DNA of 64,000 bases. Source: Sphaerodactylus townsendi (taxonomy: Eukaryota). Positions 8,401 through 14,600 of the stretch are shown in pieces. The translations under genes were made by a program, and so were the position numbers. Under the pieces are notes generated by a model. The model had not been told where the DNA came from. It made no database searches and saw nothing but the letters and a program-made list of their open reading frames with translations. The stretch is taken from the NCBI RefSeq assembly GCF_021028975.2, contig NC_059441.1, forward strand, positions 18,476,001 through 18,540,000, in the 5' to 3' direction. Position 1 is the stretch's first letter. Every line of letters begins with the position of its first letter.

Positions 8401-9179
8401 ATAATGCAATTTTAATCCACTTTTACAACTGTTTGCGAGTGAATTTTGCTATTCTGCGCAGCTGCAAAGCACGTTGATAGTGCATTATTCTGCATGTGCA
8501 GAAAGGGGCCCGAGACACTAAGAGCCTGAAAACAGACTTTTAAAATATCTTCAGTACAAAAGCATATTTTTAAAAGCCAAGCAACTAATAAAGGTCACTG
8601 TTGAGTGGAACTTTTCAAAGGCATTGTATGGAAACTGAAACCTCCCTTTAGTTTACTGTGCTTGTTTGTTTCAGAAACAGACAAACCTAGCAACCCTGTC
8701 TTTCCACACAATACCCAAGGTGGTTTTCAAGATATAAACACGTAATTACAACACATCAGCCAGGTTAAAGCCACAACTTCCACAAGTCATATGGCTGAGG
8801 TAGCTGCTTTTCCCCCATCCCCGTCGCTTCCCCTTTCTCCATATTTCCATTCTCCCCATGGCACTGGATATGCAATTATGGGGATTTTTACAGCCATCAT
8901 TTTAGACTCGGTTCTGAACGGTCACTTTTGTTTTGCTCTGATTTTATTGCATTGCACCCATTTATGGATAGGCTGGAAGCCCCTCAAGGGAAGGGTGGCA
9001 TTTTAATAATCATAAATAAATTTTTTTAAAAAGATGCGTCCTCCTGTCCCTCCTCGTGACTTCCAACTTGGCCATATTATCAAGCATCAGAATAAAGGAG
9101 TGAGGTGGTTATTTGCGAGGTAAAAACACTCCGGGGATGCAAAGAGCCGTCCAGTCACAGGCAAGAAACTTTGGGGCGG

Positions 9180-9560
9180 TTTGCAAAGGCACTCTGCGCA
9201 TGCTCAAGAGACCACACGCCTAGTAATGTGTCTAAATGGCAGAGAGTGCGGTAAGAGGTGACTTTTTTGCGTGGTGAGGAACGGCGGCGAGCGTTTACTC
9301 GCCCGCACGGAGCGTCCCTTTATTGCCCTCAGGCAGCGCCATTTCCGCCGCCTCAGGCCGAGCCAACGGTCTCCGAGCCCGCCCTTTTGGACGGCAAGGC
9401 CCCGCCCACCGCCTTCAAGGCCCCGCCCTCAGGGGCGGAGCTGGAAGGAGGCGGAAGTCAGGAGCTGCGGCGGAAAGGGACGCGTGGAGGAGGTCCGGTC
9501 GCATGGGAGGCGAGTCGTCTTCTTTCCTCTCCCCGGGCATTGTGTGGGCAGCGGAGCATC
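9180..9560 (+). promoter_or_regulatory. RAMAC: CpG-island promoter and probable non-coding exon 1 of RAMAC
   Basis: CpG-rich. NRF1-like TGCGCATGCTC ~9195, YY1-like CGCCATTT ~9337, GC boxes (CCCCGCCC, GGGGCGGAG) 9400-9440, ETS GGCGGAAGT ~9450. Lies 1 kb upstream of the coding exons; the exon-1 donor is not resolved. Confidence 0.75.
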
Positions 9561-9596: not shown

Positions 9597-10215
9597 GAAG
9601 CCCATACTCAGAAATGGGGCTGGAATATTGATTCATATTGATTTATTTGACCCCCAAACCTTAGGTTGCCTCATAGCACCTTATAGCCATGTATTTTTCC
9701 TGCTAGTTGTCCCCTCCTCTGCACAATTTGTATATTTCCTCTTGAATGTAAGTTTTGCAACTCCCATGCTTTACATGTGAATGCAGAACCACGCATTCCA
9801 TTTTTATTGGTGCGTATGCGTCCAATATGGAATCTGTGCCTCATTCATAACATGTGAAGGCTTGTAAATGTGTGTATAGGGGTTTAAGCCCATATTCAGA
9901 CCTGGGACTGGGTTGTTGAGTAATTTGCCCCCCATGCATTAGGCTGTGAAATTGCTTCATAGCACCTTAAAGAGAAGCCTGGTATTTTCCTGCTAATTGT
10001 CCCCTCTGCACAATGTTTATATTTCCTTTTGGAATGTGAAGTTTGTAATTCCTTGTTTTACATGTGAGTGTAATTGGTGCAGAGGTTGGCAATATGGAAT
10101 CTGCCTTATTTGTGAAGGTTTGTGAATGTATACTTAGGGGATGCTATCTGGGGCTGGGATATTGATTAATTTGGCCCTTGGAACATGGGGCTGTGAAATT
10201 GTCTTATATTGCCCA
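9597..10215 (+). repeat. Degenerate ~270-290-bp tandem repeat (~2.3 units) in RAMAC intron 1
   Basis: AAGCCCATA(C/T)TCAGA...CATAGCACCTTA...TTTTCCTGCTA..TGTCCCCT..CAATATGGAATCTG..TGTGAAGG recurs at ~9598 and ~9886, with a partial third unit at ~10145. Confidence 0.8.
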
Positions 10216-10569
10216 GTATTCCAGTTTGATTGAGGCTGATAAATAAGTTTGATTGGCATGCATGCTTGCAATGTTGAATCTCTCATTCATAATCTGTGTA
10301 TATGCCACTATCTTGGCATTCATTTACAGGGTTGCTAACCTCCAGGTGCCAATTCATATGCAGCTATTTCTGTTGTAGGAAAAAAACTTCCCAACTCATT
10401 GTCATTGACCTTGGCCCCTGGAAAAGTCTTTTTGGTTGTGTTCACTGTTCCCTCTCAAAATTCCAGCAATTCCTGATGGCTTAGCCAAACTGGGAAAAGC
10501 TGATTTACACAGATTGTTGATGTTTTAAAAGATTGTGAAGTAACTTTTTGAATCTGCAGAGATTTCAGA

Positions 10570-10706
10570 ATGGATTCTACTCCTGATATCCTTCAGCGTT
10601 ATGAGGAGATGTTTATTCATCGGTTTACATCAGATGACGCTGAATATCAGGAATACGTCAACAGCCCTGCAGCTCCACCTCCCGTAGTAGAAGATTGGTT
10701 AAACAG
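10570..10706 (+). CDS. RAMAC: RAMAC (RNMT-activating mini protein, FAM103A1) coding exon A: RNMT-activation domain copy 1
   Basis: MDSTPDILQRYEEMFIHRFTSDDAEYQEYVNSPAAPPPVVEDWLNR is colinear with human RAM 1-46 (FEEMFASRFT...EYQEY...PPIVEEW, recalled). Upstream acceptor cag at 10557-59; donor AG|GTCTGT, phase 2. Confidence 0.9.
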
Positions 10707-11294
10707 GTCTGTAACATTCCCCCTTGGGCTGTGATTTTTTTCCTTTTGGTGGGGAGTCACAGGGCTGTATTGTGGGGAATGGAGGCTGCAGATCCATAAA
10801 TCAGTGCAAAACAATGTGTTGCCCCTGTAATTACTAGTGTCTTCCTTCTTTAATTGTAGTGTATTAGTTGAGCAGGTGGACACACAACAGGCAAACCAGA
10901 TCTTTTCATGATCGCTACAAAGCTTGGAAAAAACCTTATGCCTGTATAATTGCATTGCAGAGTAGATTGGGAACGGATGCTGCTTGTCTAAAACACTCTC
11001 TTCGTTGTTAAGAGGTGTCTCCAGAAACAGGGTTGCATCCAGCCAACTTTTCTGCTAGTGAAAAAGGCAGGAAAAAGTCTGTTGTCTATTGTGATACTGG
11101 GACCTGTGTGTACGAAAACAATAAGGGACAGAGTAAACAGATGGAGTAAAAAATGTGGCTGGATCCAACCTATTCTGAGGTCATTAATCCTTCAGAAGGC
11201 CACTGATGGAATGTTTTAACTTGAATGGGCAGCAGTGGTACAGACCACGGGTGACTGCATAAGGGAGCTGTCCACAATCGCTGAAATCCGGATG

Positions 11295-11505
11295 GCCAAG
11301 GCTAATCTTGATCGATCTCAGAAGCTAAGCAGGGTTGGTCCTGGTTCATATTTAGATGGAAGACCATCAAGGAATCCCAAGGTTGCTATTGCAGAGTTTG
11401 GCAAACCACCTCTGTGACAATCTCTTGCCTTGAAAATCCTACTGGGTTGCCAGAAGTCGGAGTCGACTTGACGGCACTTTGCATACTTTACTGAAGGTTG
11501 CACAC
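11295..11505 (+). mobile_element. 5S rRNA-derived SINE (5S-Sauria-like) between RAMAC exons A and B
   Basis: GATCTCAGAAGCTAAGCAGGGT...TTAGATGGAAGACCA 5S head, then GGCAAACCACCTCTG..TCTTGCCTTGAAAA..GACTTGACGGCAC tail. Related - strand copies at ~555-690, 23490-24110 (split), 28580-29115, 33040-33160. Confidence 0.75.
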
Positions 11506-11719
11506 GGCAAAGACCTAAGAAAGCAACAACTGCCAAGATCCGAGAAAAGCTGCTCTTGCTACAGGCTTGGGAGAATGAAGCTCAAATGTTGCTTGTGCAG
11601 TCTTGTCTAACCCATCCTGTCAATCCAGTTGGTCAACAGTTGTAGCCCTGAAACTGACATCAATAAGAAACTTTTCATCAAACTCAGGTGGTGCTTTTTT
11701 GTTTTTGTCTTTTCATCAG

Positions 11720-11884
11720 AGAACGCAGAGTGCCTTCCACACTCGAGATCCTTCAGAATTTCGAAAAGATGTTTGTCCATCGATTTTCATCGGAAGATGA
11801 GGAATATCAAAAATACGTCCAACGTCCTGAAGGCCAACCTCCCCTACTAGGAGACTGGAGAAGCAGATCGGGTGGTCGAGATCG
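11720..11884 (+). CDS. RAMAC: RAMAC coding exon B: duplicated RNMT-activation domain copy 2
   Basis: Polypyrimidine tract plus cag| acceptor; (R)ERRVPSTLEILQNFEKMFVHRFSSEDEEYQKYVQRPEGQPPLLGDWRSRSGGRD(R); donor CG|GTACTG. 165 nt, phase 2-2, in frame with exons A and C. Confidence 0.85.
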
Positions 11885-12487
11885 GTACTGTTTCTGTTTT
11901 GTCAAAATAGGTTTCTTAGTCTCACAGAAAGAAAATAAAAACATTTTGGGCATCATAGCAAAATGATGAGAGTTTGAGCATAACTATTCAAAGCAAAACA
12001 CTCAGTTGGGCAGGGAGGTTATCCTCTAGAAGAATAAACTAAGAGGTTTTCCTTGTCTACCTGGTGGGTGGGGTAGGACAGGGTCAGTTTCAGCTCCTGG
12101 AGTGTTTCCCTTTGGTGGGCTGCACCTTCGAAGGGTACAACTTGTAGAATCCTGCATCAGCTCTGAACTGGAGAGCTATTCTGCAGAGAATGTGGGTACT
12201 GGTGCCTTGGAAATGTCTGAAGAAGACATCTGTTTCAGAAGGCTGCTGCTCTTCCCCCAACATTCCTTGAGGGAGTGATCTTACTCGTGGCTGTGTCAGG
12301 ACAAGGTTTTCCAGAAACAGCCTAGAAATTAGTGTCCTTTGGATGCTTCGTTGGGCCTTGGGTGGGCTGGTTTGGTGCATAGGTTATCTGCGCAATATAT
12401 GTGATGTGCTTTGAAAAGTCTGAATTGTTTGGAAGGTGCTGCGTGAATTTTGTAATGTTTGTGCTGTTTTGTGTTCCGCTTCTTTAG

Positions 12488-12686
12488 GTTCAGAGATAAC
12501 AGACAGTTCAGAGGCAGAGGGGACAGATATGACCAGCAAGGCGGGTATCGATCTAGTCAGTGGCAAGAAAGAGGCTGGGGCAACAGTTACCAGCAACAGA
12601 GACAGTCGTCTTATTCCCAGCACGGCCGGGCGCCCCGGTACGGTTACAGTTCTTACTCTCCGGGACCCCAGTATGGTCATTACTGA
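12488..12686 (+). CDS. RAMAC: RAMAC last coding exon (NR-rich RNA-binding region and QYP-like tail)
   Basis: tttag| acceptor; FRDNRQFRGRGDRY...QWQERGWGNSYQQ...PQYGHY* resembles human LQDNRQFRGRD...QWHGRSWGNNY; ends at TGA 12686. Confidence 0.92.
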
Positions 12687-13136
12687 TAGGGCCCATTGAT
12701 GCGATGACTTGCAGTTGTATTTCCAGTATTATGATCTTTCTGTTTGGTTCTGTCAGGCATGAATCTCAATTTTATTCAGGTTTAGATTCTGAGTTTGTGT
12801 ATAATGGGTTTGTTGCGAGGGTTAATGCAAACCCGCTGATGTATTTCTGCAATGCATGTTTAGCAAAGGGTAGCTGATGTTTTGAAACTGACATGCAAAA
12901 GATAACACTGATTTCACTACCCTTCTGTTAATTTCTGCTTCCTGTTTTTGTGTCACTAGTATTTAATGGATCTGGGGAAAAAGAAATAGCGTTTGTGTCA
13001 GGCAAATCTGACAAGGGCCGAACTGCTCTTTCTGAAATCCTGATTCATATCTGGTTGTTACTAGTGGGTAGACGTACTGCTGATTTTAATCTTTAGTCGT
13101 GGGAGAGAAACATTCAGGTTGTATTTAGCTACTGCT

Positions 13137-13142
13137 AATAAA
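13137..13142 (+). terminator. Candidate polyadenylation signal of RAMAC
   Basis: AATAAA ~450 nt after the stop codon, followed by GU/U-rich sequence. Confidence 0.5.
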
Positions 13143-13432
13143 TAAGCTTATGTTTTCCAGTTTCGTTATTCCACATGTGGGTGTTTTTTATACATCTGGG
13201 CAGCATTGTTGAGATTCAGCGTGGCAAACCCAACAACTTACTGAAACAGGGCCACAATCCTTCATTTCTGCATGTGGATATGGAGGGAATCTCCATAGTT
13301 TTTCTGTGAGGTCTTGCCAGCATCTTTCATGTCCACATGCTGGAAGTTCAATTGTTGTCAATAATATAAGGCTGTTCTATTCAACTAGCATTCATTTTTA
13401 CTGTGTCAAAACCATTATTTTGTGAATTATTG

Positions 13433-13745
13433 AAGAGGAAGAGGAAAAGGGGGAGGAGGAGTTTGGATTTATATCCCCCTTTTTCTCCTGTAAGGAGACT
13501 CAAAGGGGCTTACAATCTCCTTTCCCTTCCCCCCTTACAACAAACACCCTGTGAGGTAGGTGGGGCTCAGAGAGCTCCAAAGAACTGTGACTAGGCTAAG
13601 GTCACCCAGCTGGCATGTGTTGGAGTGCACAAGCTAATCTAGTTCACCAGATAAGCCTCCACAGCTCAAGTGGCAGAGCGGGGAATCAATCCTGGTTCTC
13701 CAGGTAAGACTGCACCTGCTCTTAATCACTCCACCACGCTGGCTG
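13433..13745 (-). mobile_element. CORE-SINE (Squam3-like)
   Basis: Full-length copy. Confidence 0.85.
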
Positions 13746-14397
13746 TCATGGTAGTTTGATGCAAGAACATTTATAGTTCATTGAATGACTATCATTACAC
13801 TTTCAAACGGATGGGGAGAGCAGGGATGTGTAGGCACTAGGACTCTGGGGAGTATTCCACAACAAAGAAGTTCCAGCATGTTGAGTTCTGTGATGGAGGA
13901 ATATACAATCTACTAACATCTCTTGTGAGATAGGGTATAGGAAGGGATTTGATCCTGCAGCCACTTGGATGGAACCTAACTTCTGCCTGAGCTTAAAGTT
14001 CCCTGACAAAACCATTCCTCAGTGGCACGACATATGCTATCTCTACATTCTTTGTATGCTTTTTTGGAAAAGGAACAAGATCTAGATTAATTTCTATGTC
14101 TTTTCAAAATGTGTGGGAGGGTAAAGTTGAGGACAGAGCAAGTCCCACGCCTTTCCATCCTAGGTTTTGAATTATGGTGGCTATTTTAATTGGTCCAGGT
14201 TTTTTCCCTTCTCAAAAATAATTTTGTGGTTGTCTTGGCAACCTTTGTTTGGATTCTGGTAGTTTTTCCTTTCACAGTCCAAAGCATTTGCATGTGTAAA
14301 GAGCATGTAGGATAGAGAATACTTAACCTGTTACCTCCTTGAATGTTTTGGGGATGGGCAGCTGGGCTCTATTATTTGCTGAACGGAAGCAGATGAT

Positions 14398-14600
14398 GAA
14401 GGGGAGGAGGAATTTGGATTTATTCCCCACTTTTCTCACCTGCTTACAAGCTCCTTGCCCTTCCTCTCCCTACAACAGACACCTTGTGAGGTAGGTGGGG
14501 CTGAGAGAGTTCTGAGAGAACTGTCACTGGCCCAAAGTCACCCAGCAGGCTTCATGTGGAGGAGAGGGGAAACTACTCAGGTTCACTAGATAAGAGTCTG
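14398..14600 (-). mobile_element. CORE-SINE, partial
   Basis: 3' two-thirds of the SINE consensus. Confidence 0.75.

Follow-up and report, generated by a model that had tools for sequence, protein, structure and literature searches.

The mRNA cap methyltransferase activator RAM has been described as a one-headed "rheostat" of mRNA cap methylation, working in a 1:1 ratio with RNMT. In vaccinia virus, the cap guanine-N7 methyltransferase is allosterically activated by D12, which is the non-catalytic stimulatory subunit of D1. The two activators, whose comparison has been discussed along with the structure of the RNMT-RAM complex (PMC5137418), work alike but do not have any sequence relationship, D12 being a folded protein and a single binding unit, whereas RAM is a short disordered peptide. 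Human RAM, or RAMAC (FAM103A1), has a length of 118 amino acids, and its complex with RNMT is available as PDB entry 5E8J (Varshney et al. 2016, PMC5137418). It binds one groove of RNMT, keeps lobe and hinge steady, and increases the binding of AdoMet, with its basic region being located near the RNA exit (PMC5137418). The contacts of RAM with RNMT include salt bridges of E25, R32, and E42, hydrophobic contacts of A7, V8, F11, F15, F19, Y26, Y29, P37, P38, I39, V40, and W43, and polar contacts in the range from R18 to W43 (Varshney et al., PMC5137418). Furthermore, RNMT and RAM each stabilise the other (PMC12599247).

The gecko gene described here is RAMAC (RAM, FAM103A1) with a doubled RNMT-activation-domain exon. 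It lies in the window, that is, the 64,000-nucleotide stretch of Sphaerodactylus townsendi DNA that was analyzed (contig NC_059441.1, positions 18,476,001 to 18,540,000 of the forward strand). Like human RAM, the predicted protein belongs to the Pfam family PF15320, it contains the motif (F/Y)E.MF.HRF..D.EYQ.Y...P...PP..(E/D)W, and its second domain copy, head B, is followed by a basic N/R-rich region and a Q/Y/P-rich tail in the same order. In contrast to human RAM and to the RAM of all sampled non-squamate tetrapods, which have one activation domain, the gecko protein has two of them in tandem. This it has in common with the squamate RAMAC entries in RefSeq and UniProt (Eublepharis macularius, 170 aa; Euleptes europaea, 168 aa; Podarcis; Sceloporus; Pseudonaja); at the fetched loci, these relatives share the exon structure of A, B, and last exon, and their A and B clades are orthologous. 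The features of the locus are compiled in Table 1.

Table 1. Features of the RAMAC gene in the window (positions of the window; position 1 is its first letter).
Feature	Positions	Strand	Basis or remark
Putative promoter with CpG-rich 5' region and non-coding first exon	9280..9560	+	boundaries approximate, inferred
Exon A: 10 nt of 5'UTR, start codon at 10570, domain copy A (45 codons + 2 nt), donor AG/GTCTGT (exon start probable)	10560..10706	+	translation, Pfam RAM, joint in run X4
Intron between the domain exons, 1013 nt, with high-copy SINE-like repeat at about 11290-11460	10707..11719	+	run X4 skips exactly 1013 nt, GT..AG
Exon B: linker R-ERRV, domain copy B, start of basic region SRSGGRDR, ancestral donor CG/GTACTG	11720..11884	+	translation, Pfam RAM, 5E8J, joints in run X4 on both sides
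Second intron, 603 nt	11885..12487	+	joint 11884^12488 in run X4, GT..AG
Last coding exon C: R/N/Q-rich putative RNA-binding region, Q/Y/P/G-rich tail, TGA at 12684-12686	12488..12686	+	translation, tblastn
3'UTR, continuing past 13200	12687..13200	+	contig of run X4

Exon A is free of stops over 45 codons from its ATG (10570-10704) and exon B over 54 codons from 11721; the frame from 11720 does have stops, which is expected, because base 11720 completes the codon that is split at the end of exon A. From the letters only, the initial annotation had read the gene as RAMAC, with two exons each encoding a RAM module without stop or frameshift. Both statements are borne out by Pfam RAM (PF15320), with exon A (55.6 bits, E 8e-15) and exon B (53.9 bits, E 2.7e-14) well above the curated cut-off of 25 bits, while exon C alone has no match; exon B is additionally similar to the human RAM chain of PDB 5E8J (chain C, E 1.3e-09). 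The likeness between the two heads is confirmed as well, albeit not the exact count, since 24 identical residues out of 46 had been obtained by hand, as against 23 out of 41 (56%; 32/41 positive) in a gapless BLASTP alignment of the two peptides with an E value of 3e-19. The AG/GT sites in matching phase that had been proposed to give a 166-aa open reading frame are also found: exon A ends with AG/gt, exon B, with a length of 165 nt that is divisible by three, ends with CG/gt, and exon C follows from 12488. The length of 166 amino acids is derived from the codon tally (45 + 1 + 54 + 1 + 65 = 166), the exons having been searched one by one and not as the joined protein. The true start of exon A would probably be position 10560, directly after a CAG acceptor and 10 nt before the start given initially. 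The translation of exon C is rich in R, Q, G, Y, and S, has the C-terminal end PQYGHY, and shares 55-82% identity with its counterparts in nine other squamates (tblastn). Compared with other geckos, exon B of the window carries a 15-nt in-frame deletion (11860-11884; SGGRDR versus SGGSQRYRDR), by which the start of the basic region is shortened. A second RAMAC copy was not found by tblastn in the 64-kb window, which thus contains one RAMAC locus only and is free of N runs. Within its first 20 kb, the G+C peak is at 9001-9500 (0.56), where GC boxes and many CpG are present.

A search for runs did not return any that are on record as RNA. Run X4, which is not labelled as RNA in its record, was taken as such because its depth is confined to the exons and because it contains GT..AG joints; depth is 480-1160 over the three exons and 0-18 in both introns between them. 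Both junctions predicted initially are present in this RNA-like run: a 257-nt contig with a depth of 958 joins 10706^11720 across a 1013-nt GT..AG gap, and the joint 11884^12488, likewise GT..AG, has a depth of 1172. Exons A and B are both in the main mRNA; minor isoforms that skip A or B can be hidden by contigs. Downstream, a 991-nt contig (depth 562) spans 12487-13200 and extends beyond 13200, and at the 5' region of RAMAC the contig begins at 9480, with no joint from exon 1 to exon A among the joints listed for X4. A retrocopy origin of the joined A-B-C form was considered and is ruled out, because in the DNA runs X1 (same species) and X5 and X6 (sister species, diverged by a few per cent) both exons are contiguous and splice joints are absent.

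Alignment of the DNA shows that the copied unit begins at the acceptor, with CAG/AGATTTCAGA ATG in copy A and CAG/AGAACGCAGA GTG in copy B. Besides the acceptor, this unit includes 10 nt that once were 5'UTR, and the ATG of A is aligned to the GTG of B. In copy B, therefore, what used to be 5'UTR (10 nt) and start codon is translated today as the linker R-E-R-R-V. Where copy B of the window has GTG, Sceloporus and, by protein, Salvator still have ATG (Met). At its 3' end, copy B resembles the single exon of turtles (TGG ... AGA TCN GGT GGT ... AGA GAT CG/GTAC), including an aligned donor; the turtle acceptor appears to leave 9, not 10, nt before the ATG, which bears on the possibility that the frame of the ancestral exon may have fitted already when it was duplicated. 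Copy A stops earlier (AAC AG/GTCTG), its donor being located within the former R-S codons (AGA TCN to AGG TCN), and in Eublepharis and Sceloporus, relics of S-G-G-N are readable in the intron that follows exon A. Because the turtle exon ends like B and the S-G-G-N relics follow A, copy B represents the ancestral type of exon in its ancestral place, adjoining the basic region, while copy A has kept the start codon and uses a new donor of the same phase.

The proposed course of events would start with a tandem duplication of the first coding exon together with its acceptor on the squamate stem, once tuatara had branched off. Along with the ATG and the RNMT-activation domain, the duplicated exon would have included a few nucleotides of 5'UTR in front and the first basic residues behind. 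In living squamates, two nucleotides from the upstream donor plus the 10 nt of former UTR amount to four codons, so that, with an exon B of 165 nt, the second copy is in frame. In copy B, the old UTR and the start codon would have turned into a linker (with ATG changed to GTG in the window) and the ancestral donor would have been kept, while in copy A, an AGA-to-AGG change in the R-S codons would have given rise to a new donor that cuts right after W-x-N-R. By the codon tally, the 166-aa protein begins with head A, from which a linker of about 12 residues leads to head B, and it continues with the basic RNA-binding region and a QYP-type tail. The locus is a clear instance of exon duplication, with a former 5'UTR and its start codon having become a linker and a point change having produced a new splice donor.

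When exon B was used as a phmmer query against 1.84 billion representatives, 69 proteins were retrieved, among them seven with two matched stretches, of which three are from squamates (Phrynosoma, Lerista, and Salvator). The Salvator protein as query led to two-domain models in 14 more genera, namely, Crotalus, Pseudonaja, Podarcis, Lacerta, Sceloporus, Phrynocephalus, Anolis (A. sagrei), Eublepharis, Heteronotia, Paroedura, Euleptes, Gekko, Elgaria, and Varanus. Two-domain squamate RAMAC models are thus found in 17 genera, comprising geckos, lacertids, a teiid, a skink, iguanians, anguimorphs, and snakes, with lengths of 156-236 aa (RefSeq, GenBank, or UniProt). With the tuatara protein as query, one-domain proteins of 115-124 aa were obtained from tuatara, turtles, birds, gharial, caecilians, a frog, and mammals. 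An ortholog of exon A is present in eight squamate loci, the fetched loci lacking Elgaria and Varanus. In a tree of 46 domain sequences, from which the two-domain models of skates, mormyrids, and Protopterus were omitted, the squamate A and B copies together form one clade (99/95*) apart from the single-domain proteins. The B copies are a clade of their own (96/86*), and the A copies are found on one side of a branch (78/84); head A of the window groups with that of Euleptes (97/92*) and head B is part of the set of gecko B heads (97/83*) within the B clade, finer branching not being resolvable on the 44 columns of the alignment. The window heads are nearest to those of Euleptes, with identities of 84% (A) and 82% (B). 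Since A and B clades extend across squamates and the outgroups have a single domain, the data point to a single duplication on the squamate stem, after the tuatara split and before the divergence of geckos. In line with an old event and with no recent gene conversion, dS between the paralogues within a species ranges from 0.7 to saturated.

Departures from this pattern, as well as parallels to it, are known from several lineages. In Anolis sagrei (L007:1031-1258), the YEEMFxHRF core of head A is deleted, Y26, Y29, and W43 are replaced, and head A abuts an intact head B with no intron between them; in this lineage, the A-B intron has thus been lost and head A has decayed. Three RAM-domain exons, A, B1, and B2, are found in Crotalus tigris (L009:1956-4726), the flanks of B1 and B2 being near-identical on both sides, and RefSeq isoform X1 of this species (236 aa) has three heads; the sequence suggests that the third exon either arose by a recent additional duplication or is an assembly artefact. 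Skates (Amblyraja, Leucoraja), mormyrid fishes, the lungfish Protopterus, and the trematode Calicophoron likewise have two-domain models; judged by taxon and sequence, these duplications are separate events. Like squamates, the skates, mormyrids, and Protopterus have tandem activation domains before the basic region. Unlike in squamates, however, the first copy is far more diverged in skates and mormyrids, with W43 lost in skates, whereas the repeats of Protopterus are near-identical and the duplication is therefore recent. The repeats of Calicophoron are identical and may be an artefact.

Selection on the two heads was estimated from codon alignments of the window with eight or nine squamate loci. 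The Nei-Gojobori dN/dS (ratio of means) is 0.21 for head A and 0.13 for head B, and the corresponding omega values (GY+F1X4, on a fixed tree that puts the window with Eublepharis by assumption) are 0.27 and 0.23. An omega of 1 is rejected for head A (2dlnL 40.5, p 2e-10) as well as for head B (2dlnL 57.7, p 3e-14). By these estimates, both heads are under purifying selection; the old duplication with selection in both copies that the initial annotation had supposed is thereby supported, given also the squamate-wide A and B clades and the single domain of tuatara, turtles, birds, and a crocodilian.

The comparison of the residues contacting RNMT included 16 A and 18 B heads. In all of them, R18, E25, P37, P38, and W43 are invariant, and F15, Y26, and Y29 are nearly invariant in both heads. 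Position 42 is D, not E, in most copies of A and B, and position 19 is mostly Y in A. While R32 is invariant in B, it is found in 10 of the 16 A heads. The only fixed difference between A and B is at position 44, which is L, A, M, or S in A and R, K, or Q in B. In the window, all contact residues of head B are kept or conservatively changed (E42D), and those of head A are kept except for R32S; S32 and E28 set this head A apart from its squamate relatives. S36, the ERK site of mammalian RAM, is replaced by P in both heads, as is the case in other sauropsids.

The best explanation, and a highly probable one, is a tandem duplication in RAMAC on the squamate stem, with both heads spliced and selected, head B serving as the main activator and head A as a second RNMT-binding module. 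Head B, placed beside the RNA-binding region as in human RAM, would be the main allosteric activator of RNMT, because its geometry is the ancestral one, its R32 is invariant, and its Nei-Gojobori dN/dS is the lower of the two, and because it has remained intact in Anolis sagrei. Head A would probably act as the second RNMT-binding head, either raising occupancy by rebinding or avidity or holding a second RNMT. Most likely, it still binds the same RNMT groove, because its contact set is kept and under constraint; a counterpoint is the S of the window head A at the position of R32, which forms a salt bridge to E397 of RNMT. Simultaneous binding of both heads to one RNMT in the known mode is impossible, since there is a single RAM groove; with one groove per RNMT, the heads would therefore alternate on one RNMT or hold two. 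That the protein would be a two-headed activator with one RNMT per head, forming a 2:1 complex on a single RNA-binding tail, is considered unlikely. If true, RNMT stability and dosage at the transcription start would change, and the recurrent duplications in skates, mormyrids, and lungfish together with the third copy of the rattlesnake would speak for a recurrent advantage of extra heads.

Likewise unlikely is the view that only head B works as RAM and that head A is no longer an activator of RNMT, serving instead as a decoy or competitor for the occupancy of RNMT, as a degron or an element of stability, or as a site for another partner. Such a role would fit with the somewhat faster evolution of A (0.21 versus 0.13 by NG86), its variable R32 and mostly Y at position 19, the fixed difference at position 44, the lack of an adjacent basic region, and the decay in Anolis sagrei, which shows that head A is dispensable, that is, not essential everywhere; yet 15 of 16 contact positions show the same residue or a conservative change across the squamate crown, as would fit use of the same groove, and omega is, with 0.27, far under 1. 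It is very improbable that A and B are alternative exons, either mutually exclusive or cassette, with a usual protein of one domain. Skipping of the 165-nt exon B would keep the frame, with the joining of A to C also giving AGG for R, RefSeq isoforms exist in Crotalus and Elgaria, and rare variants are dropped from contigs. However, the depth of the A-B contig (958) is comparable to that of the B-C joint (1172) and of exon C (562), an A-C joint is not among the joints listed for X4, the first possible start codon within exon B is that of M14, and A and B are joined in the RefSeq models of 14 genera. Least probable of all is that one of the copies is a dead pseudo-exon, the two-domain frame then being a product of chance or annotation. 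It could be entertained only as long as the first reading of the locus had no expression data, and it is refuted by both exons being spliced, under purifying selection, and orthologous across squamates.

Squamata comprise over 11,000 species, and a whole vertebrate order has kept a second intact head under selection since its stem. The initial annotation had presented the two-domain architecture as new unless databases already annotated it broadly across sauropsids. As stated, this novelty does not stand, because RefSeq, GenBank, or UniProt already hold two-domain squamate models from 17 genera; beyond Squamata the expectation of a broad annotation is not borne out, other sauropsids being single-domain. 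With the architecture present in public automatic annotations across Squamata, novelty is therefore reduced in part. These entries are automatic models that carry the family name only, and a domain note was not seen in them. A literature search did not find a paper describing two-domain squamate RAMAC, and a 2025 review on RNMT-RAM does not mention duplication, reptiles, or stoichiometry (PMC12599247). Two-domain squamate RAMAC is, thus, an undescribed variant and not a new system, its models being public and its architecture unremarked in the literature found. The value of the finding is moderate, given that the protein models are already public; it would lie in the constructs that nature provides (A, B, A+B, and that of anoles), with which the effect of the number of RAM heads on RNMT stability, activity, and stoichiometry can be probed.

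Several repeats are found in and near the gene. Imperfect direct repeats of about 250-300 nt with the recurring motifs 'attgtcccctc...tgcacaat' and 'tttacatgtga' are located in intron 1 (9640-10250). The SINE-like element in the A-B intron (11290-11460) is of high copy number and has many loose contig ends in the DNA runs, where the summed contig depth reaches 1e4-1e5 over 11210-11477. Part of it resembles 5S rRNA by eye; Rfam and tRNA scans of the window, including this repeat, did not give any match. Two copies of another interspersed repeat (GGAGGAGGAGTTTGGATTTATATCCCC...CTGTGAGGTAGGTGGGGCT...) are found just downstream of the RAMAC 3'UTR, at 13440-13760 and 14400-14600.
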